Shown: positions 8,092 to 46,275 of the stretch, one piece after another
Layout of the letters: the number at the start of each line of letters is the position of its first letter
Numbering within the stretch: the first letter of the stretch is position 1
Sequence record: LR535910.1
DNA length: 64,000 nt
Strand: one strand, 5' to 3'
Translations under genes and position numbers: made by a program
Notes under the pieces: model-generated
The model's database searches: none
The model's input: the letters and a program-made list of their open reading frames with translations, nothing else
What the model was told of the DNA's origin: nothing

Positions 8092-8239
8092 GTGGGAACT
8101 GTTATCGTTAGCAGAAGTTCGTAACAGAATCGATAGGGCTATTGCAAGGAGAAAACATGTTCGGCCTGTTTCAGGAGAAAAAACAATTGCGCCGCCAATT
8201 AGAAATACTGGAATTGGAACTCAGCCTATCAAAGACTGA
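8081..8239 (+). CDS. Small hypothetical protein, 52 aa
   Basis: GGAGG RBS at 8071 before ATG 8081; overlaps the next gene by 83 nt. Confidence 0.4.
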   Translation: MDFKWELLSLAEVRNRIDRAIARRKHVRPVSGEKTIAPPIRNTGIGTQPIKD

Positions 8240-8558
8240 GTTAGAAATTTCGAAAGAAGCGTGGAAGAGAAATCTTGATGAATCTTTCGAAGAACGCCGT
8301 AAGCTTACACGACTACTTTCTGAGGAACAGTCTAAGAACCGGAAACTCGAAGACGAGCTACGGGATGCCCGACGAGATGCGGATCTGCGTGACAAGATGT
8401 TAGGATGGAACCTGGGTGCCCTAATCTATTTCATAGAGCAACGTTGGGAACCAAAAACACTCCTTGAGTTACTCTATGAAAAACTCTCCTGTGTAGGTAA
8501 ACGTTCTGCAGCCATCGAGTATTTCCGTAGTCACGGTTTCGAGGTAAAAGATGAGTAA
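8157..8558 (+). CDS. Hypothetical coiled-coil protein
   Basis: AAGGAG RBS before ATG 8157; long E/K/R/L heptad segment. Confidence 0.7.
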   Translation: MFGLFQEKKQLRRQLEILELELSLSKTELEISKEAWKRNLDESFEERRKLTRLLSEEQSKNRKLEDELRDARRDADLRDKMLGWNLGALIYFIEQRWEPKTLLELLYEKLSCVGKRSAAIEYFRSHGFEVKDE

Positions 8559-8892
8559 AATGAACACGAAACGAACGTCAGTCGTGTTCCAGCAGGGACG
8601 CGCACGACTCTATAAAGGTAAGAAACTTATTGGTACATTTGAGTATCAAGAGAACCAGCTAATCGTCGATGTTATCATTCTCGGTTTAGCAGCGAAGTGG
8701 CCACCTTTAAAAAGGACATTGGCCAAACGTGCGATGGAGAAACGCCGACGCGACCAGATAAAAGCATTTAACAAACCATTTCCACATGAGGCGTACCGAG
8801 TACAGCCTCGTTGCGCACACATCACGACGTCACCCATGCTTGCTAAGCTTGATGTGTCCGATCTGAGAGAAATGTTAACTGTACATCCGTAA
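8551..8892 (+). CDS. Hypothetical basic protein, 113 aa
   Basis: GAGG RBS; overlaps the previous stop. Confidence 0.7.
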   Translation: MSKMNTKRTSVVFQQGRARLYKGKKLIGTFEYQENQLIVDVIILGLAAKWPPLKRTLAKRAMEKRRRDQIKAFNKPFPHEAYRVQPRCAHITTSPMLAKLDVSDLREMLTVHP

Positions 8893-8919
8893 TGTCGCAA
8901 CCCCTTAAGGAGTATTAAA

Positions 8920-9360
8920 ATGTTAAAGCCACGCAAACAGAAAAGATTACAGTTTGTCAAAATAGTACATCCGGAGTCCCGTCGTGTTACAGGTGGACGT
9001 CTCTACGTGGGTAAACACCGTAGTCGACTCATCACCTGGTCGGCAATGGCCAACGTAGCCACTCAACTCCAGGCAATGGTTGAAGACCGTTGTCAGTTAA
9101 AAGGGGACTTCTTTCAAGAGAAGAAACCCTACCGTGATATCTTCCGTACACTGAAAGCGTGCTGGGTACTCAGTTGGGTGCCTGGCCGCGAACAACTTTA
9201 TTTTCTGCGTAAGTTCCCACGCCCTATGCCGAAAGAAAACATTAGCGTTTTCTTAGACAAACTAAAACGTTTTAATGGTATCGGCATTAACGCTAATAAA
9301 GAGCAAGTTTCTGCTACAGTAGCAGCCCGGAAACTCTTACGCGATTACGTGGCCGATTGA
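8920..9360 (+). CDS. Hypothetical basic protein, 146 aa
   Basis: AAGGAG RBS; terminator downstream. Confidence 0.75.
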   Translation: MLKPRKQKRLQFVKIVHPESRRVTGGRLYVGKHRSRLITWSAMANVATQLQAMVEDRCQLKGDFFQEKKPYRDIFRTLKACWVLSWVPGREQLYFLRKFPRPMPKENISVFLDKLKRFNGIGINANKEQVSATVAARKLLRDYVAD

Positions 9361-9400
9361 CTTGAGAGGCACTTATCCCAAAAGCGGTCAATAAAGCAGC

Positions 9401-9438
9401 ACCCTACTCCTTCGGGAGTAGGGTTTCTTCTTTTTTTG
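9401..9438 (+). terminator. Rho-independent terminator
   Basis: ACCCTACTCC-TTCG-GGAGTAGGGT followed by TTCTTCTTTTTTT. Confidence 0.85.
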
Positions 9439-9458
9439 TCTAGTCCGATTACAATTAT

Positions 9459-9500
9459 TTTCAGATATATATTACTTAGGTGAGAGTTAACCATTAACTC
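9459..9500 (+). promoter_or_regulatory. Putative early phage promoter (TATATTAC core) with downstream GAGTTAA hairpin
   Basis: TTTCAGATATATATTACTTAGGTGA then GAGTTAA-CCA-TTAACTC; near-identical copy at 61160. TATATTAC is the described phiKZ early promoter core. Confidence 0.7.
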
Positions 9501-9535
9501 TTATCTAATCGACCATTATCTTAAGGAGTTTTAAC

Positions 9536-9982
9536 ATGTACATTCTGAATAACGAACTTACTAAGTACGCTAGCAAAAACCCGATTATGATTTCTTTCCT
9601 AATCGTGATGGCGGCCAACAAACAAGACCCTAGCGAATTCACTACTGAGGTCTTCGAAGAGATTATCGCTAACGCCAAAGAAGCCACGTTCCAGACCACA
9701 GAGCCTACTCGCGACGAGTTCCCCCTAGGTGAAGCCGGCGATGTAATGTTTAACGACATGGTTGCTTCGTACTACATCAATAGACGTGGCATGGAAATCG
9801 AATACGATGAACTTCCTACTAGCAGCTTTGCTGAAATGATTCGTGATTATCGTCGTCAAGTTGTCTCTGACGATATCGTAAAAAAATACATGGCACAAAT
9901 CAGCCCATTCAGTCTTGAATTCGAAAACCGCGCGGTTGCCTTAGCAACACATCGCCTGCGTTTAGAAAAAGAAGTACACTAA
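9536..9982 (+). CDS. Hypothetical early protein, 148 aa
   Basis: AAGGAG RBS; first gene after the promoter motif. Confidence 0.8.
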   Translation: MYILNNELTKYASKNPIMISFLIVMAANKQDPSEFTTEVFEEIIANAKEATFQTTEPTRDEFPLGEAGDVMFNDMVASYYINRRGMEIEYDELPTSSFAEMIRDYRRQVVSDDIVKKYMAQISPFSLEFENRAVALATHRLRLEKEVH

Positions 9983-10044
9983 TAATAACCCGGCGGGCAA
10001 AGTCCCGCCAATCAACCTGCAATCTACAAAAAAAGGAATATCCC

Positions 10045-10263
10045 ATGCGCAACCTCTTCTCCAAATCTGAAATCAAACCTATTGTTGAAACCACCGCCAA
10101 ACATAAGCCTGACATGATTGACCTGCTTCTGAAAATGTCTGCAGCAGAAGCCAAAGCTTTCATGAAAACAATGAAAGACGGCGATAAAATGATTGACAAT
10201 GTTGAAGTAACCTACGGTGTTAAAGACCGCCCAAAGAATAACGGCCTCGTGTGGGTCTGTTAA
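10045..10263 (+). CDS. Small hypothetical protein, 72 aa
   Basis: AAGGA RBS; Lys/Met-rich. Confidence 0.65.
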   Translation: MRNLFSKSEIKPIVETTAKHKPDMIDLLLKMSAAEAKAFMKTMKDGDKMIDNVEVTYGVKDRPKNNGLVWVC

Positions 10264-10869: not shown

Positions 10870-11667
10870 ATGTCTTTTACTTCAAAACAGAATCTGCTAA
10901 AACTCATCAACGAAGAGAATAAGATAAGCCCACCGCTTACCTTTGACGATGTTGATATCGGACTGCCGGAGGTTGTGTCAGTAGACGGTCGTGATTCGGA
11001 GGTAGTCCTTACCTCAAAAATGCGCGGTGATGAAGGTACGCAAGTGATTGTGGACTACCATCGTCGTCCATTAGAGGACTACCTTAAAGGCGATGTTGCC
11101 TTTGGAGACGAGGACGTGCAAACCACGCACGACTTACTCGCGGCGATTAACGAGCGTTTTAATCTGTCTATCTTACCTGAGGATATCGAAGATAACCCCA
11201 TTGATGGACAGACGCACACAGTCGTTGCTGTTGAAACTTCCCACGAGTGGCGAAGTCAAGCGGTCATCGAGCTGAAACCTGCTACACCTCTGGCAGAAGT
11301 AGTAACCAATACAGAGTTGAGCGGTCTTCTGTACCCGGATCACCAGGACATCCAGTTGGGTCAGGCGTATATCTATTCGCGTGACATCGATTGTAGCCAC
11401 ATCTCTCGTTTCCTGAGCCTCTTAGCGGTCGGTATCGAGGTAGATGACACGGCGTTGGCAATCGAACTCAACAAATGTGTTCCTGAGATTTGGGTAGCTG
11501 AAGATACCCCATCCCCGTATAACCTGCGTGGTGCCACTGTCGTATTCGACGGCGTACCTGCAGACTTGCCGGGAGCAAATACGGCGTTCGCGAAAGTCGT
11601 GTCAGTGCAACTGACCGATAAATGTACGAACTTCCAGGGCAGCCTCAACCTACACTTTAACAACTAG
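10870..11667 (+). CDS. Virion structural paralogue, class I (anchor domain plus C-terminal domain ending LHFN)
   Basis: LINEEN...RDS...YHRRPL N-terminus; VVTNTELSGLLYP linker; ends FQGSLNLHFNN. Confidence 0.75.
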   Translation: MSFTSKQNLLKLINEENKISPPLTFDDVDIGLPEVVSVDGRDSEVVLTSKMRGDEGTQVIVDYHRRPLEDYLKGDVAFGDEDVQTTHDLLAAINERFNLSILPEDIEDNPIDGQTHTVVAVETSHEWRSQAVIELKPATPLAEVVTNTELSGLLYPDHQDIQLGQAYIYSRDIDCSHISRFLSLLAVGIEVDDTALAIELNKCVPEIWVAEDTPSPYNLRGATVVFDGVPADLPGANTAFAKVVSVQLTDKCTNFQGSLNLHFNN

Positions 11668-11677
11668 GAGGGTATAG

Positions 11678-12520
11678 GTGTCTATTTACGATAAGCCCTC
11701 GAAAGAGATGTTGTTAGATGCTATTAACCGACAGAACGGATTAACGGCCAATCCACTCACATGGGAGCAGGTTGCAACTGGCTTCCCTGAGTCTGTCCAA
11801 ACGCCTGGCGCTGACCGGAATACACGTGTGCTCTTATACGGGTTGAACGGCAAGGGCTACAAAGGCAACGTTACGCTCGAATACGACCGTATCGAAATGG
11901 AAATTCTGTTCAGGAACGTAATACCGGTAGTCGTTGCCGACCCGGTAAATAAACTCTCTGAGTTGTTGCCGTTTCTGAATGCGAAATACGGCTTGTCTTT
12001 AGTTGCCGACGATATCGTTGACCAGTCAGTAAAAGATTTGGGAGAAAGCTGGTTAATCGATGTGACTATTAAGCCCGGTTGCTTGGCCTGGCAAGGTGGT
12101 TTCCGTTTACGCTTTGCGAAGTTCTTCCCGAACTTGGCGGATGTGGTTACGGATGTTGACCTCAGCGCAATTATCGCGCCGTTCGTGGTTGCTAGTAAAC
12201 CACAGGCTGAGTATGTGGCGTATGGTTACGATTGGACTGAACTGCAAAAACAGTTCACTACCGATTGGGCTTACAACCGCGCAATCACCGCGGCGGATGT
12301 TGAATTGCTTAACGAAGTGGTGCCATTAAAGTTTGCATATGTGACGGGGGCGACTGCGCAACCTGAACAAATTGCGCTTCAAGGTGCACGATATATGGGG
12401 ATAACTTCAGTCACACCGAACGATAGTTACAACCCCGATTATCAGCGTGTGGCGATTATCAAGCTAGCTGCGGACAGCAACTACGCCGGTAATCTCATCC
12501 TTCACTATCTCCCGATATAA
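11678..12520 (+). CDS. Virion structural paralogue, class I
   Basis: DAINRQN...RNTRV...GYKGNVTLEYDRI; ends GNLILHYLPI. Confidence 0.75.
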   Translation: MSIYDKPSKEMLLDAINRQNGLTANPLTWEQVATGFPESVQTPGADRNTRVLLYGLNGKGYKGNVTLEYDRIEMEILFRNVIPVVVADPVNKLSELLPFLNAKYGLSLVADDIVDQSVKDLGESWLIDVTIKPGCLAWQGGFRLRFAKFFPNLADVVTDVDLSAIIAPFVVASKPQAEYVAYGYDWTELQKQFTTDWAYNRAITAADVELLNEVVPLKFAYVTGATAQPEQIALQGARYMGITSVTPNDSYNPDYQRVAIIKLAADSNYAGNLILHYLPI

Positions 12521-33714: not shown

Positions 33715-34242
33715 ATGGCAGTCATCTCTGCAAAAGACCAACTCGTTGCGCTGTTTAATGCTGCAAACAGCGGACTGTCTAGTCCGTTAACTTCTGCTGA
33801 CGTTACATTCGGCGCTGTTGCTGACTATTCACCAGCAGATTCTGGAGACACTCGCAACTCCAAACTCACCATCACTGCCACCGCGGAATCCGCTAACTTT
33901 ACTGGCGAGAAAGAGCTGCATTATACCCGCCTCGATTCATCGAACATCATCGGTGCGAAAGCAGTTACCGCTGACCAGGCAGAATGGGATACCGATGAAG
34001 AAGTGCTTGCTTTTGTCAACGCAGATCTAATTGCCGCCGGTAAAACGGAAGATGCGTTTGCATTGTCTGAACTCACCATTTCACGCGAGGACGGCGACAG
34101 TGGTGAGAAAATCATCACTGTTATGGTGAAAGAAGGCCACATTAAATACCAACCTGCCAGCCTTGCAGTTTATACTGTAACGCAGCCAATCGTTAAAACT
34201 GACCTGAGCACCACCAACGGTGAACTGGACGGATTCGTTTAA
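33715..34242 (+). CDS. Stand-alone anchor-domain virion protein ending TDLSTTNGELDGFV
   Basis: LFNAAN...TRNSKL...HYTRLD pattern and the same C-terminal motif as the cassette A genes; AAGGA RBS; own terminator. Confidence 0.75.
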   Translation: MAVISAKDQLVALFNAANSGLSSPLTSADVTFGAVADYSPADSGDTRNSKLTITATAESANFTGEKELHYTRLDSSNIIGAKAVTADQAEWDTDEEVLAFVNADLIAAGKTEDAFALSELTISREDGDSGEKIITVMVKEGHIKYQPASLAVYTVTQPIVKTDLSTTNGELDGFV

Positions 34243-34270: not shown

Positions 34271-34320
34271 AAATAAAAGGTACCTACCTCCCTTCGGGGA
34301 GGTAGGGCCTTTATTTTCTT
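34271..34320. terminator. Bidirectional terminator closing the minus-strand fibre/radical SAM operon
   Basis: AAATAAAAGG-TA-CCTACCTCCC-TTCG-GGGAGGTAGG-G-CCTTTATTTT. Confidence 0.85.
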
Positions 34321-34323
34321 TGC

Positions 34324-34995
34324 TTACATGCCGAGTGACTCGGACAATGTTTTTAATCCAGTGTAATCGCGCTTTTCAGCTAACTCACGGATTTGGCGTT
34401 TGTTATCTGCCATTGCTGAGTGCAACACTTGGTCACGTGCAACAATAGCGGCCAGCAACGCTTTACATTGGGCTACTGTAAACGGACTGTGCTTAGTATT
34501 CAGCGTATCGAGCCAGTATTCTGGTGCGGTATCTGCCTGAATGTATTGACCGAGGATGGTACGCGACGATTCATCGGCTTGAAAGTGACTACCTTCAAAC
34601 TCGATATAACCATGGCGCTCATCTTCGTAGCGGTGGTCGAGTTCCAACAGCATCTTCTGCACGTCTTCGTAAATGTAACGTGCGGTAGATTTCAGATTCC
34701 CGCGAATTTCGTCGAGGTCAATCTCCAGCACATTAGCAATAAACTCTTTCGTGCGTTTCAATGTGAAGTTAGCTTCAATCTCCGACATCTCATACAGCTT
34801 CATGCGTGCCAGGGCTTCTTTATCAGACATCCCTTCGATGAGATGGTAATGGAGTAATGCACAAAATCCGGTACGGCCCTGATCCTGCGCACCGATTCGT
34901 TCCATGAAATTACCGTGACGATCAATCGGCAAATCACGCTGGAAATAACGGGCGCGGATCTCTTCGTTCGTTAAGCTTTTGTCAGTAACAGACAT
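34324..34995 (-). CDS. DUF4376 domain protein (tail-fibre-assembly type)
   Basis: C-terminal GYIEFEGSHFQADESSR...YWLDTLN...FTVAQCKALLAAI pattern. Confidence 0.65.
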   Translation of the reverse strand: MSVTDKSLTNEEIRARYFQRDLPIDRHGNFMERIGAQDQGRTGFCALLHYHLIEGMSDKEALARMKLYEMSEIEANFTLKRTKEFIANVLEIDLDEIRGNLKSTARYIYEDVQKMLLELDHRYEDERHGYIEFEGSHFQADESSRTILGQYIQADTAPEYWLDTLNTKHSPFTVAQCKALLAAIVARDQVLHSAMADNKRQIRELAEKRDYTGLKTLSESLGM

Positions 34996-35537
34996 TCGTC
35001 CTCCTCAATCAGGCCAAGTTCTAACAACAAACCGAAGTCCAGCATCTGGAAGTCCTGATCGAGGTTACCGGCCCACAACAGAGAAATGTTGTGTTGCTCT
35101 TCTTCTTCCAACTGCGGGAGCAGGTGTTCTTCGAAGATTTGACGCTCTGTGTAATAAGCGTCAACCGGGTTATTGGAGCGTAAGTTACGAATACGCATCC
35201 GCGGGAATGACAAGCCCAACGCCACTAAACTTTCAGGACTGGCTTCATCAATAGAGTGACGTAGCAGTTCGATTTTGTGGCGTGGGTATGCAAGCAGTCG
35301 CTTCTCAAAGCCAGGGTTGCGCTTTTCGATTTCCGCGACAGACTCGTGTCCTTTCTCAACGCAGTAGACCGGGATCATCACATTCAGCCCGTATTTAATC
35401 AACAGGCTTTGGATTTCATCAGTGAAGTCTTCCCCTGCCACAATTGCGTGCACATTGTACAGCTTGCTTTTGCGCAGGAAGCGATCGACCAAGTGCAGTT
35501 TACGCTTCGTAAAATTGTGAATCAGTATTGACTTCAT
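34971..35537 (-). CDS. Unknown protein of the radical SAM cluster, 188 aa (start reassigned)
   Basis: GGAG RBS before the ATG at 35537; overlaps both neighbours. Confidence 0.7.
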   Translation of the reverse strand: MKSILIHNFTKRKLHLVDRFLRKSKLYNVHAIVAGEDFTDEIQSLLIKYGLNVMIPVYCVEKGHESVAEIEKRNPGFEKRLLAYPRHKIELLRHSIDEASPESLVALGLSFPRMRIRNLRSNNPVDAYYTERQIFEEHLLPQLEEEEQHNISLLWAGNLDQDFQMLDFGLLLELGLIEEDECLLLTKA

Positions 35538-36828
35538 TCTGGGCTCCGTTTTGTAATTTTTCTGCTTCAGCACGTTGGCGTACACAACGTGAACAATAGC
35601 ACATGGATTTATCATGCAAATCTGATGCGCGAGTCGTACCAGTTTTCTGATACCAATATTCCGCCGCCATCAGCTTCGCAGTAGTCCAACCACACTGACG
35701 ACGCTCGGCGTGATACGCTTTACGGTCTTCCAGTGTACCTTCACCGTTTTCGTACGATGCTGCTGCGCAGCTACCGCAGCTGTGTTTCATCGGACACCCT
35801 AAACAGGTTTCTGGGTAGTTGGTGTACTGCGTTTGAATCTCTTCTAACAGCTTACCACCGTCCAGGCTCACAAACTCACGACCGACCAGTTCTGCTACAG
35901 CAGAACGGGAAGTTACCGTGGACATGAAACGGTTACAACCGTAAATCTTGCGATCAAAGCCGAGACAGGTCATGTGCGTCAACGTACCGCAGTACGGTTT
36001 CAGGCGTTCTGGGTCGAGACGAACAGAGTCGTCATGTAAGAGTTTGTCACGCCAATCCGGGTCCCAAGTTGCCATAAAGTTCAGGCCATCCGGGATGATG
36101 TGCGTAATCGTGTTACGCGGGTTGGTGTGCAGACCCTTCTCAATCCAGTAGTCCATCACGTCCATCATCTGGTTCGCGATATCCAACGCCATATGGCGCG
36201 GCAGGATATCTTCGTACGTTACGTTACCAGAAATGGTACCACCGCCGGACATGTCAATTAACGATTTCATGCTGGCGGCATAGTGCGGCAATGTATCGAT
36301 CGTAAACGTCGCCTTTACGCCCAGCTCAGCGATGCCAACACTCTTCAGGTAATTGTAACCGCGTACCGCAGCTTCGTACGACCCTTCACGCGTCGTGGTA
36401 AAGATACGATATTTGTCATGGACTTCAGGTAAACCATCGATGGAGACCCCAATAGACAGTTTGTCTTTCCAGCGCTCGATAATTTCTTTGTTCAGCGGAC
36501 GGTCCAGAAGCGTACCGTTCGTGGAGATACTGAACATATACGGGCGATTGTGTTCTGCGCATAACTTCTCTGCGGTTTCAAAGGCCGCCAAAAGAAGTTT
36601 AGGCTGCATGAACGGCTCACCACCGATGATATCGATGATGACTTCAACGTTCGGGATATCTTTATCACGCTCGAAACAAGCGTGGATAAAATCAATCACG
36701 TCTGCTACTTTGTTGTTACGCGGATATTTACGCTCGTAGCAGTATTCGCAGTCCAGGTTACATGACAGGTTAGTCACAACCTGATACGTGCGTGGTGTGT
36801 ACTGGATTTGCTGTTCGCTATTACTCAT
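35500..36828 (-). CDS. Radical SAM enzyme with SPASM-type C-terminal domain (putative peptide maturase)
   Basis: CNLDCEYC (CX3CX2C), GGEP, SISTNGTLL, VSIDG; auxiliary Cys motifs YCGTLTHMTCLGFDRKIYGC and CLGCPMKHSCGSC...QC; extra C-terminal CYCSRC. Confidence 0.9.
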   Translation of the reverse strand: MSNSEQQIQYTPRTYQVVTNLSCNLDCEYCYERKYPRNNKVADVIDFIHACFERDKDIPNVEVIIDIIGGEPFMQPKLLLAAFETAEKLCAEHNRPYMFSISTNGTLLDRPLNKEIIERWKDKLSIGVSIDGLPEVHDKYRIFTTTREGSYEAAVRGYNYLKSVGIAELGVKATFTIDTLPHYAASMKSLIDMSGGGTISGNVTYEDILPRHMALDIANQMMDVMDYWIEKGLHTNPRNTITHIIPDGLNFMATWDPDWRDKLLHDDSVRLDPERLKPYCGTLTHMTCLGFDRKIYGCNRFMSTVTSRSAVAELVGREFVSLDGGKLLEEIQTQYTNYPETCLGCPMKHSCGSCAAASYENGEGTLEDRKAYHAERRQCGWTTAKLMAAEYWYQKTGTTRASDLHDKSMCYCSRCVRQRAEAEKLQNGAQNEVNTDSQFYEA

Positions 36829-37735
36829 TGTTCGCCGCCCGTTTACGCTTAGCAGAAATTACACGGTTGATGTAGTTATACGCATCAACGCCGATAGAAC
36901 GCGCCAGGCGATTACAGCCGACTTCCAATATCTCTGGGGCGTTCTGAATTTGCTCCTGCGTACCGTCGGCGTTAAGCCACAGCACTTCACTGCACGTGTT
37001 GCACTCGGTATCGAACATTTTACTGATTGCAAGCCCACATTCAGAATCGTTCTGCATGTTAAGGCGTTCGATATTGTCGAGTATTTTCCAATACCCGTAC
37101 ATGAAGTTCATGACGTGGTCTGGCGATAACGGTTTCGGCATCATCGCATCAAACAACAACGACACACCACCTGGACGGTAATGATAGATTGCTCGGTGCA
37201 GCTCGATGAAATCTTCGTACCAGCGTTTATCACCTAACTGGTCACGCGTCATCACACCCCAGGTGTAATAGTTGTCCAGCTCGTACAGCACTTCCAGCGC
37301 TTCGTGATTACCACCGTTTACAAAGTTCATAAACGGACGTTCCGACTTCTTGTAGCCGTCAATGGACACAAAGATAAGGTCGAACTGTTTCAGCAACGGC
37401 AGATGTGATTTACGCATCTTTAAACCGTTGGTGTACATGTGATGACGGAGGTTCGGATGAGACTCCTTCAACTCGTTCACGAAGTCTTCAATCTTGCGCT
37501 GCGCTAACAGCGGCTCACCGCCCGTCCAATGAATCTCACCGATATCCGGATTCTTCTCTAAAATCGAGAGAATCTCTTCACGTTGAAACTCACGAGAAGT
37601 ATCTTCTCTATCCATGTAATAAGCCCCTCCACAGAAGCTACAGTCTAAGTTACACTTAGAAGTTGCGACAACCGACAGAATTGACGGTTTGTCGTACAGT
37701 TCAGACGAGATCCTGGATTCTACTTGATCTGTCAT
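36821..37735 (-). CDS. Second radical SAM protein (short auxiliary domain; start reassigned)
   Basis: CNLDCSFC, WTGGEPLL, MYTNG, VSIDG; C-terminal C...CNTC...C; GGAG RBS before the ATG at 37735. Confidence 0.85.
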   Translation of the reverse strand: MTDQVESRISSELYDKPSILSVVATSKCNLDCSFCGGAYYMDREDTSREFQREEILSILEKNPDIGEIHWTGGEPLLAQRKIEDFVNELKESHPNLRHHMYTNGLKMRKSHLPLLKQFDLIFVSIDGYKKSERPFMNFVNGGNHEALEVLYELDNYYTWGVMTRDQLGDKRWYEDFIELHRAIYHYRPGGVSLLFDAMMPKPLSPDHVMNFMYGYWKILDNIERLNMQNDSECGLAISKMFDTECNTCSEVLWLNADGTQEQIQNAPEILEVGCNRLARSIGVDAYNYINRVISAKRKRAANNE

Positions 37736-37757
37736 TGCAGGTTGCTCCAGTATATTT

Positions 37758-38645
37758 TTAAATATAATCAATGGCGAATAAAGGATCTTCGTCTACGTTA
37801 GCGCCAGGCACCAGTAGCATCGGGTCGTGATAGGCAGCTAAAATTTTGTTCAGGTCGGCGTGTCTTTCGTTCAGACGTTTCAAATCGGCCAACGTTACCG
37901 AACGACCACGAATCTCAGAAACAGCTTCTGCTTCTTCTTTCGTTAAATCCACCTTCGTTAAGAGGAAACTTACCAGCTTACTCAAATCCGCTTCCGTCGC
38001 CGGATAATCCCCATATCGGGTTTGAACCAGATGTTGCATCCACGGTTTACGAATACGTTTGGTGATTTCGAAATCGTCAGTCAGTGCATACCAGACAGAA
38101 CGCTTTTTATCCCACACGAACTTATAGCTATACGCCATCATGTCCGCTAAACGGGTGATGCCGAGTTCTTTATACCCCTCGATATCGATGTATGGTTCGG
38201 TGTCGAAATACGTTTCCGTATCGGCAGGTACCAGTACAAAGTAGTAAGGGAACGAGCCCAGATAGTCCGGACTCCACCAACGGCGCGCCATCGGTTTTGC
38301 TTCCAGTTCGTCAAACGGTGTAAACATCAGTTCTAAATCGACGCTGTTGTTCAAAATCCCTTCACTGAAGAAATACTTACCGTCGACTAACACGCCACGA
38401 GAGTTACCATCGCCGTTAAAGATAACGATGGCCTCTGCAACCATATCACGGATCTTAAACGTATTTTCTACGGTGTAGTTCTTCTTGTCGGTCAAGAAGC
38501 GACCACGAACCTTTGGCCACTCACCAGGAATCTGTGCAATCAGTCTGACTTTGTCAGCGAGGTGTGCACGCACTGAATCTGGGGAAGATAGATGCAGCGG
38601 GTGGTTGAATGTGGTTTTATACGCAAGATGCAAATCGTTTTTCAT
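37758..38645 (-). CDS. Unknown protein between the Cys-rich peptides and the radical SAM genes, 295 aa
   Basis: GGAG RBS; co-oriented; no motif recognised. Confidence 0.75.
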   Translation of the reverse strand: MKNDLHLAYKTTFNHPLHLSSPDSVRAHLADKVRLIAQIPGEWPKVRGRFLTDKKNYTVENTFKIRDMVAEAIVIFNGDGNSRGVLVDGKYFFSEGILNNSVDLELMFTPFDELEAKPMARRWWSPDYLGSFPYYFVLVPADTETYFDTEPYIDIEGYKELGITRLADMMAYSYKFVWDKKRSVWYALTDDFEITKRIRKPWMQHLVQTRYGDYPATEADLSKLVSFLLTKVDLTKEEAEAVSEIRGRSVTLADLKRLNERHADLNKILAAYHDPMLLVPGANVDEDPLFAIDYI

Positions 38646-38667
38646 TTAATACTCCGAACGTTTTCTG

Positions 38668-38874
38668 TTATCGATTCCCCGCTCCACGGCTACAGCTTCC
38701 GCTGCAGGACCAGCTACACCCACCATTACAGTTATAGTGAGAAAGCGGTAAGCCAGCCAGGTTATTTGTGGTCGACACGGTGCCCTGGTTAGCGATATAG
38801 TTGTTTGCCTGTGCGGTTGTAATGTAACCTTCTACCGTAACGAGACGGTTTCGAATAGTCTTGAGACTGATCAC
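38668..38874 (-). CDS. Cys-X3 repeat peptide 3 (short core, 4 Cys)
   Basis: Leader MISLKTIRNRLVTVEG, core NCNGGCSWSCSGSCSRG; GGAGG RBS. Confidence 0.8.
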   Translation of the reverse strand: MISLKTIRNRLVTVEGYITTAQANNYIANQGTVSTTNNLAGLPLSHYNCNGGCSWSCSGSCSRGAGNR

Positions 38875-38885
38875 ATAAGCCTCCG

Positions 38886-39287
38886 TCAGTTAGGACCTGA
38901 ACAACCACCAGAACACGCGCCGGAGCAGTTTGCGGAGCAGGATTTGCCACAGCCGCCAGAGCAGTTACCAGTACACGTTCCGCTACAACCACCAGAACAT
39001 GAAGAGCTGCAACCCGTACAGCTGCTGCTACAGCCCGATACACAGTTTGCGGAACAAGTCGACCCACAACCACCCGTAGCAGACCCAGTACACCCGCCAG
39101 AACAACTCGAGCAACTAAAAGAGCATGTGCCACCACAGTCATAGTGCGAACGGCCTTGACCTGCGAACAAGTCGGCGTTATTCGTAGCTTTATTGCGAAT
39201 GTAGTTTTGCACATTCGTGGTGTTCTTTAAAGCGTTTGCATCGATCGTGTTTAATCGGTTATTCAGTTCTTTTAATCCAATTGCCAT
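38886..39287 (-). CDS. Cys-X3 repeat peptide 2 (20 Cys), putative radical SAM substrate
   Basis: Leader MAIGLKELNNRLNTIDA; core DCGGTCSFSC...CSGACSGGCSGPN; GGGGG RBS. Confidence 0.85.
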   Translation of the reverse strand: MAIGLKELNNRLNTIDANALKNTTNVQNYIRNKATNNADLFAGQGRSHYDCGGTCSFSCSSCSGGCTGSATGGCGSTCSANCVSGCSSSCTGCSSSCSGGCSGTCTGNCSGGCGKSCSANCSGACSGGCSGPN

Positions 39288-39297
39288 TTAATCCCCC

Positions 39298-39690
39298 TTA
39301 GCGACCTGAACAGCCGCCGGAGCAGGCCCCGGAGCAGTTTGCGGAACAAGAGCCGCCGCAACCACCTGAACAGTTACCGGTACAGCTACTACTGCAACCA
39401 CCAGAACAACCAGAGCAACCAGAACAGTTACCGCCACACGTCGAAGAACAGCTACCGATACAAGAAGCAGAACAGCTTCCTGAACAGCTCGAACAGCCAT
39501 GCGAGCAACCGTTAGAGCACGTCCAAGAACATGTCCCGCCGCAATCTAGCTGTGCTTTCGTCCAACCCCCAAATCGGTCTGCTGCATTATGGGCTTTAGA
39601 GGCCACTTGCGCCTCGATGCGGGGGCCTGTCGCCATGTTAGCTTCGACTATCTGGACGCGGTTTCTGACGTCTTTAATAGATATCGCCAT
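39298..39690 (-). CDS. Cys-X3 repeat peptide 1 (21 Cys), putative radical SAM substrate
   Basis: Leader MAISIKDVRNRVQIVEA; core DCGGTCSWTC...CSGACSGGCSGR; AAGGA RBS. Confidence 0.85.
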   Translation of the reverse strand: MAISIKDVRNRVQIVEANMATGPRIEAQVASKAHNAADRFGGWTKAQLDCGGTCSWTCSNGCSHGCSSCSGSCSASCIGSCSSTCGGNCSGCSGCSGGCSSSCTGNCSGGCGGSCSANCSGACSGGCSGR

Positions 39691-39755
39691 TACGCTTCCT
39701 TAAAAAGTAGAACGAGCGGACTATGTCCATAAACATAGTCCGGCTCGTAAACAAG

Positions 39756-40958
39756 TTACTTAGTACCCGCTTCAGCTTGAACATCGTCGCGCGAGGTGAG
39801 GTTGTTGTTGACGTGAACAGCAGCCTGCACAACACCTCCATACTGTTTATGGAGGTAATTCGGGTGTGGGTTATCCGCAGCCGCATGGTTCGCCAGATTC
39901 TGGTTTGCCTGCGAAATTGCGTTGGTGTTGTTTATAACCTGAGTTTTAAGACTGTTGATTTGTCCTTGCAGGTTATCAATTTGCTGTTGGAAGTCTTTGC
40001 CCTGATTCTCAAGATCCGTGACGCGCTGATTTGTTTCATTCAGTGCAGACTGAAGATCGTTAACCATCTTCTGTAATTGCAACACCAGAGAATTAAGGTT
40101 AGCTAATGCTAACGACATTTTCTGGTAATTTTGAGCAACCACGTTAAGCTGGTCGTTCCACGCGGCTAACGAAGCCACAATTGCATCGATGCGTTGCCCC
40201 AACGCCGTGTCTGCTGCTCTTAAGTCGCCGATATCGTTGATAGTGGCGTCAATGGCAGTCTGTACACTTTGAATCAGGGCACGAATCTCCGTCTCCGTCA
40301 GGCCATTAACCTGATGAATGTCGAGATTGTGTACGTTACCTTCGGCGTTGATGTGGGTATTTAAGGCGTCGAGGAAGTCGTTTCTCAGACCGTCCAGAAT
40401 ACCTTTAATTTCTTCCAGCTGTACTGCAGAGCCGGAGTTAATCGCATCTTTAATCCCCGCGAGTACGGTAATGATATACTCAAAACCGTAGATATCGCCA
40501 AGGTCTTTATACGTCGGGGCGGACGGGAACGTATCGGGTACGTTTCGAAGATCCTTGAAGTCCACCACACGGTCTTCAATTTTCAGCGACGCGATCGCTT
40601 GTCGGATACCTTCGACGTTCGCGGACTGAAAACCACCAACGACTTGCGCAGAGACTTCGATATCAGTAGGAATGGCCGAGTTAGTTACCACCACACCCAT
40701 GACCACTTCGCGGTTCTTGGTCATTTTCTGATATGCAGTATGTGCAAAAATCAGTTCGTAGTCTGTGCCGCGTTTATACGGGTAGACACCTGGTTTATTC
40801 GCAGCTGCCAAGCGGAAGGTATCCGCGTAGAAAGCTCCGTCAGGAAAAGCAAAAGCCCGGTTAACTTTACCAGAACCTAACGTAATACGCCGTGTAACGG
40901 CGTTCGACGTTAATGTCCCGGTAAGGTCGAGCGGGTACTGATGAATGATTTCGGCCAT
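39756..40958 (-). CDS. Short tail fibre or whisker-like protein with long coiled coil (start reassigned)
   Basis: YPLDLTG..SN attachment-type N-terminus shared with the giant fibres; HINAEGNVH and HAAADNPH repeats; heptad coiled coil in the C-terminal third; AGGAG RBS before 40958. Confidence 0.7.
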   Translation of the reverse strand: MAEIIHQYPLDLTGTLTSNAVTRRITLGSGKVNRAFAFPDGAFYADTFRLAAANKPGVYPYKRGTDYELIFAHTAYQKMTKNREVVMGVVVTNSAIPTDIEVSAQVVGGFQSANVEGIRQAIASLKIEDRVVDFKDLRNVPDTFPSAPTYKDLGDIYGFEYIITVLAGIKDAINSGSAVQLEEIKGILDGLRNDFLDALNTHINAEGNVHNLDIHQVNGLTETEIRALIQSVQTAIDATINDIGDLRAADTALGQRIDAIVASLAAWNDQLNVVAQNYQKMSLALANLNSLVLQLQKMVNDLQSALNETNQRVTDLENQGKDFQQQIDNLQGQINSLKTQVINNTNAISQANQNLANHAAADNPHPNYLHKQYGGVVQAAVHVNNNLTSRDDVQAEAGTK

Positions 40959-41005
40959 TGCCAAACTCCTTTGATTGGGGCTTCCTTGCCCCATAGCGCT
41001 ATCTG

Positions 41006-46221: not shown

Positions 46222-46275
46222 ACCGCCCTCCCAATAACGGAAGGGCGGTTTACCTACGGACTACCCGCCCGTAGG
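46222..46275 (-). terminator. Tandem hairpins between two fibre genes (terminator or processing site)
   Basis: ACCGCCCT...AGGGCGGT and CCTACGG...CCGTAGG stems; TTTTATT follows on the minus strand. Confidence 0.5.

Follow-up and report, generated by a model that had tools for sequence, protein, structure and literature searches.

The tail-fibre operon and its radical-SAM genes

The window, which is the whole 64,000-nt stretch of record LR535910.1 that was analysed, belongs to a SPN3US-like jumbo phage, a giant Salmonella phage of the SPN3US type. Two genes for radical-SAM enzymes, a large one (SPN3US gp163) and a small one (gp164), are located on its minus strand within the tail-fibre operon, and the 240-kb SPN3US genome has no PF04055 genes besides these two. 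The features of this minus-strand unit are given here from its upstream side to its end.

39756..40994, minus strand: 412-aa coiled-coil virion or fibre protein, SPN3US gp167 (phrog_2163 virion structural protein; annotated as 'virion structural protein 20')
39298..39690, minus strand: Cys-ladder protein 1, 130 aa, a presumed substrate (open reading frame; TIGR04114 18.4 bits against a cut-off of 20; phrog_6085)
38886..39287, minus strand: Cys-ladder protein 2, 133 aa (open reading frame; TIGR04114 16.4 bits against a cut-off of 20; phrog_6085)
38668..38874, minus strand: Cys-ladder protein 3, 68 aa, with a short ladder (open reading frame; phrog_6085)
37758..38645, minus strand: 295-aa protein between the ladder genes and the enzymes, SPN3US gp165 (open reading frame; phrog_8030)
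36821..37735, minus strand: small radical-SAM enzyme, 304 aa, SPN3US gp164 (open reading frame; PF04055 58.7 bits)
36821..36828, minus strand: 8-nt gene overlap ATGAGTAA, with the large gene starting across the stop of the small one (read from the sequence)
35500..36828, minus strand: large radical-SAM/SPASM enzyme, 442 aa, SPN3US gp163 (open reading frame; PF04055 55.6 bits; match to CteB, 5wgg)
34971..35537, minus strand: gp162-like protein (open reading frame; phrog_7988 aligned from residue 27 of the long frame)
34324..34995, minus strand: DUF4376 protein gp161, the final gene of the operon (PF14301, 1.4e-9)
34283..34306, no strand: strong bidirectional terminator-like hairpin at the end of the minus-strand unit (10 pairs, 7 GC)

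The presumed substrates are the three small Cys-X3 ladder proteins, which are encoded three genes upstream of the radical-SAM pair and provide the shared substrate context that the initial annotation had supposed for the two enzymes. A Protein Atlas look-up of gp165 gave no usable match; the corresponding position in L002, L003, L005 and L020 is held by a 224-257 aa protein with a similar C-terminal motif and weak identity (20-27%). The length of the small enzyme is counted from the ATG at 37735, with a GGAG 9 nt ahead of it, and a start at the TTG at 37771 would yield 316 aa. The 8-nt overlap of the two enzyme genes, which had already been described, is real and is consistent with translational coupling, and similar overlaps occur in distant pairs (8 nt in L195, 13 nt and 1 nt in L193, and 4 nt in L196). 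The gp162-like gene in turn overlaps the 3' end of the large-enzyme gene by 38 nt. A hairpin search found no strong terminator on the minus strand from 46222 to 34306, the next minus-strand hairpin of comparable strength on the upstream side being at 46222-46249. DUF4376 genes also flank the ladder and enzyme genes in L193 and L195. In RNA runs, the stretch was matched in wastewater contigs only.

Architecture and relatives of the two enzymes

Both proteins are radical-SAM members by their PF04055 scores, which exceed the Pfam cut-off of 29.5 bits. The Cys sites that are relevant to their predicted clusters are as follows.

36739..36762, minus strand: CX3CX2C SAM-cluster motif of the large enzyme (C23, C27, C30), near-invariant in 26 homologues
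35692..35991, minus strand: SPASM region of the large enzyme with eight conserved Cys (280, 288, 298, 342, 345, 351, 354, 379), from the alignment of 26 homologues
35584..35601, minus strand: C-terminal CxCxxC of the large enzyme (C410, C412, C415), jumbo-phage clade only
37631..37654, minus strand: CX3CX2C motif of the small enzyme (C28, C32, C35), invariant in 21 sequences
36914..37003, minus strand: C-terminal Cys of the small enzyme (C245, C248, C274), a candidate site for a single auxiliary cluster, from the alignment of 21 sequences

The near-identical CNLDCxxC starts to which the initial annotation drew attention were confirmed as S-CNLDC-EYC in the large enzyme (residues 22-30), which also carries a GGEP motif, and as K-CNLDC-SFC in the small one (residues 27-35). 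The eight auxiliary Cys of the large enzyme are invariant or at least 90% conserved among the 26 homologues, down to 31% identity, and their number is enough for two predicted auxiliary [4Fe-4S] clusters. By its sequence, the large enzyme has the C-terminal domain with 7-8 Cys that defines the SPASM subgroup, and in structural alignment this region superposes on the SPASM domains of CteB and anSME; the Pfam SPASM model gave no match to the enzyme at E 0.01. The claim of a full SPASM-like Cys set therefore stands, while that of an additional terminal H...CYCSRC site had to be narrowed, since the CxCxxC is present in 9/9 jumbo-phage sequences and 0/17 others in the alignment, and the His ahead of it is found in about half of the nine jumbo sequences and is not conserved.

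In VIA, the AlphaFold2 model of the large enzyme (pLDDT 87.8) aligns best with CteB (Z 31.8 over 340 residues), and then with anSME (27.0) and ChlB (26.9). A profile search likewise gave CteB (5wgg) at E 2.8e-37 and anSME at 9e-17. Since the structural match begins at CteB residue 92, the large enzyme has no RRE (leader-binding) domain. Its best NCBIfam matches are TIGR04115 (3e-36) and PapB (1e-32), HxsB is matched at 4.8e-21, and the matches listed are mostly peptide-maturase families, with QueE, NrdG and MoaA not among them. All of these curated scores are far below cut-off, hence the chemistry of the large enzyme is not transferable by family membership.

In the small enzyme, CX3CX2C and GGEP are invariant across the 21 aligned sequences, which include the distant partners from L002, L003 and L005. 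The C...CxxC...C tail that had been attributed to it is retained in three positions, with C245 and C274 invariant and C248 at least 90% conserved, whereas the first Cys, C233, is not conserved. In structural alignment, this C-terminal domain falls on the SPASM region of CteB and anSME. With regard to a twitch domain, in which 3-4 Cys of a shortened SPASM-like domain bind one auxiliary cluster, it has the three conserved Cys, scores 40.4 bits against NF033640 (cut-off 170), and lacks the C-terminal Cys in one lineage, that of the L020 fusion. The model of the whole enzyme (pLDDT 87.9) aligns with CteB, ChlB, TigE and anSME at Z 17.6-19.2 (CteB 19.2, anSME 17.9), compared with about 15 for viperin and MoaA (MoaA 15.3). 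Judged from this model, the small enzyme has a shortened form of the same peptide-maturase fold as the large enzyme. Its NCBIfam scores are low for QueE (40 against 260), NrdG (39 against 131) and MoaA (43 against 284), the MoaA, QueE, NrdG and viperin matches (1e-10 to 1e-12) cover only about 110 N-terminal residues, and the HxsC match (6e-12) covers only about 90. Thus both enzymes group with peptide- or protein-modifying maturases and not with those of the QueE, NrdG or MoaA type, as had been anticipated. Profile-profile comparison aligns the two with each other over the radical-SAM core only (98% probability, 167 columns, 21% identity), and because the alignment is confined to this core, there is no sign of a recent duplication.

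Pairing, natural fusions and ladder linkage

Relatives of the large enzyme are found on at least 429 viral contigs, and the small-enzyme family, clustered at 50% identity, is represented by about 50 full-length proteins, so that the initial view of the pair as a rarity of one lytic phage is not supported. Most multi-domain matches in the small-family search are unrelated multi-radical-SAM proteins with scores summed over generic cores. A pattern-based search of viral and genome collections gave full-length relatives of the small enzyme only in SPN3US-like phages and generic N-terminal matches elsewhere.

A tree of the large enzyme was built from 75 distinct loci. In this tree the 18 rows with paired or fused enzymes form one clade (SH-aLRT 100), cleanly apart from a clade of the 57 rows that have a single enzyme. 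The small enzyme is confined to the former (18/75 distinct loci), where it always adjoins the large enzyme or is fused to it, and the reading frames of the adjacent genes often overlap. Three further, distant members of the small family (86-125 bits) each adjoin a large enzyme and a ladder as well. The minimal locus, L196, consists of a free ladder peptide, a small enzyme and a large enzyme. Six fusion proteins were examined, namely L020 (686 aa, encoded at 8137-10197 of that locus), P0098 (634 aa), P0150, P0151, P0152 and P0270. P0098 is 30% identical to L020 end to end. A residue-by-residue check of five fusions revealed that CX3CX2C and GGE[PS] are each retained in two copies; in P0270, CX3CX2C likewise occurs twice. 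Because they are always adjacent in one clade, often overlap and are fused in six proteins, the large and small enzymes are, on comparative grounds, a functionally coupled pair of maturases with two predicted active sites. The small enzyme is absent from 57 of the 75 distinct loci and is therefore not needed for the core reaction.

The linkage to the ladders is tight. A Cys-X3 ladder is encoded within 9 kb of the large-enzyme homologue in 84/85 loci, as opposed to 0/87 control loci (1.24 Mb) around generic radical-SAM genes, these being the genes that the pattern-based small-enzyme search had found. The large-enzyme loci accordingly display the arrangement by which the TIGR04115/TIGR04114 system is recognized, a maturase beside a Cys-X3 repeat target. 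The ladder proteins of the relatives match the Pfam family tSAM_targ_Cxxx_rpt (PF27846), and the median number of Cys in a ladder is about 21. In the small-enzyme clade, the ladders form the very C-terminal end of fibre-like proteins and follow a conserved fibre motif. Ladder composition differs little between the paired and the single-enzyme clades, so it offers no clue to a second chemistry. CSW[ST]C, a motif with Trp or Phe at the ladder start, was considered as a target of the small enzyme and rejected as a general rule because three paired or fused loci (L005, L016 and L020) lack it.

Possible activities of the pair

CteB and PapB, a ranthipeptide maturase, join Cys to carbon by thioether bonds in repeat peptides that are rich in Cys. 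CteB (the SCIFF maturase, PDB 5wgg/5why) and PapB have in common with the large enzyme the architecture of a radical-SAM core with a full SPASM domain, and they are its best structural and profile matches, the PapB match extending over residues 22-357. However, the large enzyme lacks the N-terminal RRE domain of CteB, and its scores exclude membership in either family (113.6 bits against a cut-off of 340 for PapB, NF047865, and 53.9 against 425 for SCIFF, TIGR03974). Their substrates are short secreted peptides, whereas the phage ladder proteins span 68-600 aa with up to dozens of Cys-X3 units, and the phage system possesses a second radical-SAM partner and, in the jumbo clade, the added CxCxxC tail. 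The CXXX-repeat system (TIGR04115 with TIGR04114; PF27846) supplies the nearest family, TIGR04115 being the top NCBIfam match, although the large enzyme scores 125.6 bits, split over two stretches, where equivalog membership calls for 350; the ladder proteins of the window also remain under the cut-off of the TIGR04114 target model, and the fibre-operon setting and the presence of two enzymes set the phage system apart. HxsB/HxsC, like the phage pair, combine a long SPASM enzyme with a short radical-SAM enzyme of about 290 aa and a substrate with a short-period repeat, but this repeat is His-X-Ser instead of Cys-X3, and scores of 75.1 against 370 and 45.0 against 267.9 bits limit the resemblance to architecture. 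anSME (PDB 4k36-4k39) converts a single Cys or Ser of sulfatases to formylglycine by oxidation. It is comparable to the large enzyme in being a SPASM enzyme that has no RRE and whose target residue, Cys or Ser, belongs to a folded protein, except that a sulfatase or CxPxR motif is absent from the phage system.

Taken together, gp163 and gp164 are probably, though with some reserve, a co-translated pair that modifies the ladder proteins of the late tail-fibre operon, with the large enzyme as core maturase and the small one performing a second radical step. Gene linkage points to the ladders as the substrate. The large enzyme, which lacks an RRE, would carry a single SAM-cleaving [4Fe-4S] cluster and hold two auxiliary clusters in its full SPASM domain; it would most likely walk along the C-[ST]-G-x repeats and put in intramolecular sulfur-to-carbon crosslinks, a thioether chemistry suggested by its closest relatives. 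The small enzyme, predicted to be catalytically competent and to have a reduced C-terminal three-Cys domain, would act on the ladder in physical association with the large one, as the fusions and overlapping genes imply, and would perform a second radical step of unspecified type. The product presumably functions at the fibres. The initial annotation had offered either two chemistries on one substrate or a heterodimer of a catalytic and a partner subunit; the former is favoured over a dead partner because the fusions keep both sets of motifs, while its example of thioether crosslinking plus epimerisation can serve as an analogy only.

It is unlikely that the large enzyme alone is catalytic and that the small one is a scaffold or substrate-recognition partner replacing the missing RRE. 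Such a role would agree with the onset of the structural match at CteB residue 92, with the faster evolution of the small enzyme (40-72% identity, where the large enzymes of those genomes share 63-83%) and with the dispensability of its auxiliary Cys in one lineage, but loss of the catalytic motifs would be expected in a subunit with a structural role alone, and these motifs are invariant in 21/21 aligned small enzymes and in the small-enzyme portions of the five fusions that were checked for both. Equally improbable is a division of substrates, in which the large enzyme modifies the ladders and the small enzyme the 412-aa fibre protein, gp165 or the N-terminal domains of the ladder proteins. 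The co-occurrence of a gp165-like gene and the restriction of the small enzyme to the clade with ladders behind a fibre motif are compatible with it; the single-polypeptide fusions and the minimal locus, however, speak for one shared substrate.

The ladders themselves could alternatively be metal-binding or disulfide-bonded. Fibre tips with metal-binding repeats are known in phages (T4 gp37), and together with the extreme Cys density of the ladders they lend something to the notion of metal or Fe-S scaffolds into which the enzymes build or insert a cluster in the manner of NifB or HydG, with no peptide crosslinks. This is very unlikely, as the neighbours of the large enzyme are peptide maturases at Z 27-32, and NifB, HydE and HydG reach only 11-14. 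Least credible of all is a role in boosting host metabolism, the two being auxiliary metabolic genes or nucleotide modifiers similar to QueE, NrdG, MoaA or viperin, as the SPFM genome paper reads its radical-SAM genes (PMC6614189) and as one SPFM2 annotation naming the small enzyme MoaA and the weak N-terminal matches might suggest, given that those matches are short and far below cut-off, that the fold search puts peptide maturases first, and that the genes are located in the fibre operon with a ladder linkage (84/85 loci) that the 87 control loci around generic radical-SAM genes do not have.

Beyond the favoured reading of a ladder-modifying pair, we tentatively consider a stapled structural protein, in which the large enzyme would lay thioether rings along the ladder and the small enzyme would add a different radical modification, resulting in a covalently rigid fibre rod or tip. 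Within the same, rather doubtful proposal, the small enzyme would represent a radical-SAM subfamily that has not been described before and whose reduced SPASM domain carries three Cys. A literature search turned up nothing on what the radical-SAM proteins of SPN3US do, on the chemistry of CXXX repeats, or on SPASM enzymes in connection with phage fibres. gp163-gp167 go unmentioned in the SPN3US virion papers and supplements consulted, so neither expression nor modification is documented there, and a 2026 jumbo-phage review does not mention them either.

To conclude, the evidence re-assigns gp163 and gp164 from the metabolic helpers of published notes to the maturation of phage structural proteins. 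The existence of one- and two-enzyme clades alongside natural fusions offers a ready-made design for learning what the second enzyme contributes. Should the ladders be crosslinked by these enzymes, phage fibres would constitute a large, untapped reservoir of radical-SAM peptide chemistry, and part of the host-contact apparatus would depend on Fe-S enzymes, and therefore possibly on the iron and oxygen state of the host. If the fibres were indeed stapled, the pair would form a two-active-site maturase complex with new chemistry and, to our knowledge, the first RiPP-type radical chemistry to build a part of a virion, as we know of no such case in the literature searched.

Gene anatomy and the transcription unit

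The two radical SAM genes lie side by side on the minus strand, and ORF calling confirms the coordinates and lengths proposed for them in the initial annotation:

36821-37735, minus strand: small enzyme gene, 304-aa ORF (gp164 of phage SPN3US)
35500-36828, minus strand: large enzyme gene, 442-aa ORF (gp163)

The start of the large gene overlaps the stop of the small gene in ATGAGTAA, and the ATG of the small enzyme at 37735 is preceded by GGAG. Over 35500-39700 the window matches Salmonella phage SPFM4 with 100% identity, and its identity to SPN3US, a 240-kb jumbo phage of the genus Seoulvirus, is 98%. Both enzymes pass the Pfam Radical_SAM threshold, and they are the only such genes in the SPN3US genome, where they are annotated merely as 'putative radical SAM superfamily protein 1/2'. 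In GenBank record JN641803, SPN3US_0164 is given as 795 nt (264 aa) with a start about 40 codons inside the ORF, which cuts off the CX3CX2C radical SAM motif (window 37616-37735; 10117-10236 of locus L001); conservation among homologues reaches back to residue 1, so the proper start should lie at the ATG of 37735. Only scrappy matches to both enzymes are present in LR535901, LR535904, LR535905, LR535908, LR535911 and LR535912 (SPFM1, 7, 6, 10, 12 and 14), and one such protein (P0144, on a 240,197-bp contig) aligns with the small-enzyme profile as numerous short fragments that run in descending order, which looks like garbled or reversed sequence in these records rather than biology.

Strong terminator-like hairpins are found on the minus strand at 46222-46249 and 34283-34306, with none comparable between them. 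The latter (10 pairs, 7 GC) is bidirectional and lies where two genes converge, between their ends at 34242 (+) and 34324 (-). The unit comprises, in order, gp168 (a 1727-aa fibre protein, identified as a tail protein by proteomics; PMC5105663), gp167 (a 412-aa virion protein), three ladder genes, gp165, the small enzyme, the large enzyme, gp162 and a DUF4376 protein. A gp165-like protein (224-257 aa) occupies the same position in four distant loci, although the similarity is weak. The gp162-like gene (34971-35615) shares 38 nt with the 3' end of the large-enzyme gene if its start is the Met at 35537, which is backed by a PHROG profile and by the annotation of SPN3US. The sole published interpretation found for these phage genes, 'enhancing host metabolism' (PMC6614189), is contradicted by this gene context.

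Architecture of the two enzymes

Among 26 homologues of the large enzyme, down to 31% identity, CX3CX2C, GGE and eight further cysteines (280, 288, 298, 342, 345, 351, 354 and 379) are kept, and judged from the sequence these eight are all that a SPASM domain needs for its two auxiliary clusters. The terminal 'H...CYCSRC' site noted initially is real; in the form CxCxxC it is kept only in the jumbo-phage clade, and its histidine is not conserved. The best curated matches include TIGR04115, the CXXX-repeat maturase (3e-36), PapB (1e-32, nearly full length) and the geopeptide and HxsB maturase families, all far under their cut-offs. The family profile retrieves CteB, a thioether-forming SCIFF maturase, at 2.8e-37, followed by anSME. 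The AlphaFold model (pLDDT 87.8) superposes on CteB with Z 31.8 over 340 residues at rmsd 3.3 (model 11-397 on chain 92-450), and on anSME and ChlB with Z 27.0 and 26.9, in agreement with Foldseek. Because the match begins past the leader-binding domain of CteB, the large enzyme is without an RRE.

In 21 small-enzyme sequences, very distant partners included, CX3CX2C, GGEP and the C-terminal cysteines 245, 248 and 274 are kept; Cys 233, which the initial annotation had counted as the first of the tail, is not. Sequence-family matches are weak and mixed (TIGR04084, HxsC, PapB, viperin, MoaA, QueE and NrdG) and extend over about 110 residues at the N-terminus, so that on these comparisons they are uninformative for placing the enzyme. 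Its model (pLDDT 87.9) matches peptide and protein maturases over its whole length (CteB Z 19.2, ChlB Z 18.6, TigE Z 18.4, anSME Z 17.9) and thus better than viperin and MoaA (Z about 15), for which reason the small enzyme is best read, from the model, as a shortened version of this maturase architecture whose C-terminal domain is reduced and twitch-like. Identity between the small and the large enzyme is only 26% over the core, the one region in which their family profiles align, which speaks against a recent duplication. Neither falls among the queuosine, RNR-activase or other non-peptide families, the placement that had been set against a peptide substrate at the outset.

The long and short radical SAM pair HxsB/HxsC, which acts on a repeat peptide, is the closest architectural precedent. 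Neither gp163 nor gp164 reaches any curated cut-off, those of HxsB/HxsC included.

Pairing and natural fusions

The small partner is not universal. In a quick, midpoint-rooted tree of 75 distinct large enzymes with some long branches, an 18-row clade (SH-aLRT 100) holds all loci that have the small enzyme, 17 of them as a pair and one as a fusion, and a 57-row clade (SH-aLRT 100) carries the large-type enzyme without it. An exhaustive profile search puts the small family at about 50 full-length cluster representatives; four distant members were looked up, and all three on long enough contigs have a large enzyme of the paired clade and a ladder gene directly next to them. The small gene always adjoins the large one, in the order small to large in SPN3US and loci L002 and L196 and large to small in L005 and L195, and their frames overlap in most distant loci examined. 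Furthermore, six proteins are natural fusions with the small half N-terminal:

L020: 686 aa
P0098: 634 aa, 30% identical to L020 end to end
P0150, P0151 and P0152
P0270: two CX3CX2C motifs

Such fusions are classic sequence evidence that the partnership is functional and probably physical. The five checked residue by residue each have two CX3CX2C and two GGE[PS] motifs, and because both active sites are retained, of the two arrangements first suggested, two chemistries are favoured over an enzyme with an inert helper. The C-terminal cysteines of the small half are gone in one fusion lineage, therefore this site is not essential everywhere.

Other arrangements were also encountered. A lambda-GpJ-type phage contig (L193, 4925-8105) has three consecutive radical SAM genes of 362 (single-clade), 319 (small) and 381 aa (large) downstream of a ladder protein and a DUF4376 gene. 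In L196 (642-971) the ladder is a free peptide with a leader of about 14 residues directly ahead of the small and large enzymes, beside a 2OG-Fe(II) oxygenase gene; this minimal system would be well suited to biochemistry. P0169-P0171, P0223 and P0249 (1,100-1,360 aa), unrelated to the gp163/gp164 pair, are striking multi-active-site enzymes with four tandem radical SAM cores.

Ladder proteins and a proposed mechanism

Three small Cys-X3 ladder proteins are encoded on the same strand, three genes upstream of the enzymes (38668-39690; 11386-12206 of locus L001), and score just below the cut-off of the TIGR04114 target-repeat model. JN641803 annotates just one of the three, SPN3US_0166, in shortened form, and the 130-aa and 68-aa ORFs have no annotation there. 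A ladder lies within 9 kb of a large-enzyme homologue in 84 of 85 loci (80 from IMG/VR), the sole exception being cut off by a contig end, and in 0 of 87 control loci around generic radical SAM genes (1.24 Mb). In a Deferribacter prophage whose tail tip is of the lambda type, a T4-like contig of 213 kb and another contig of 140 kb, the homologue is likewise 1-3 genes from a protein that has a Cys ladder at its end. The ladders repeat C-[ST]-G-x as their unit, and 73-84% of the steps are spaced by 3 residues. Paired-clade ladders (L001-L021) stand at the extreme C-terminus after the fibre-type motif NAxxLxGxxxxxYxC, and their usual first residues are CSW[ST]C; those of the single-enzyme clade (L022-L085) begin with C[RA]GAC[ST]GLC after about 120 aa of N-terminal domain.

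Curated family models already exist for CXXX-repeat maturases and their targets, and a literature search found no published account of their chemistry. We propose that the overlapping genes yield both Fe-S enzymes late in infection at a fixed ratio, and that in the reducing cytoplasm the two act jointly on the ladder cores. There the large enzyme would form repeated Cys-to-carbon thioether links as CteB and PapB do, and the small enzyme may carry out a second radical step.
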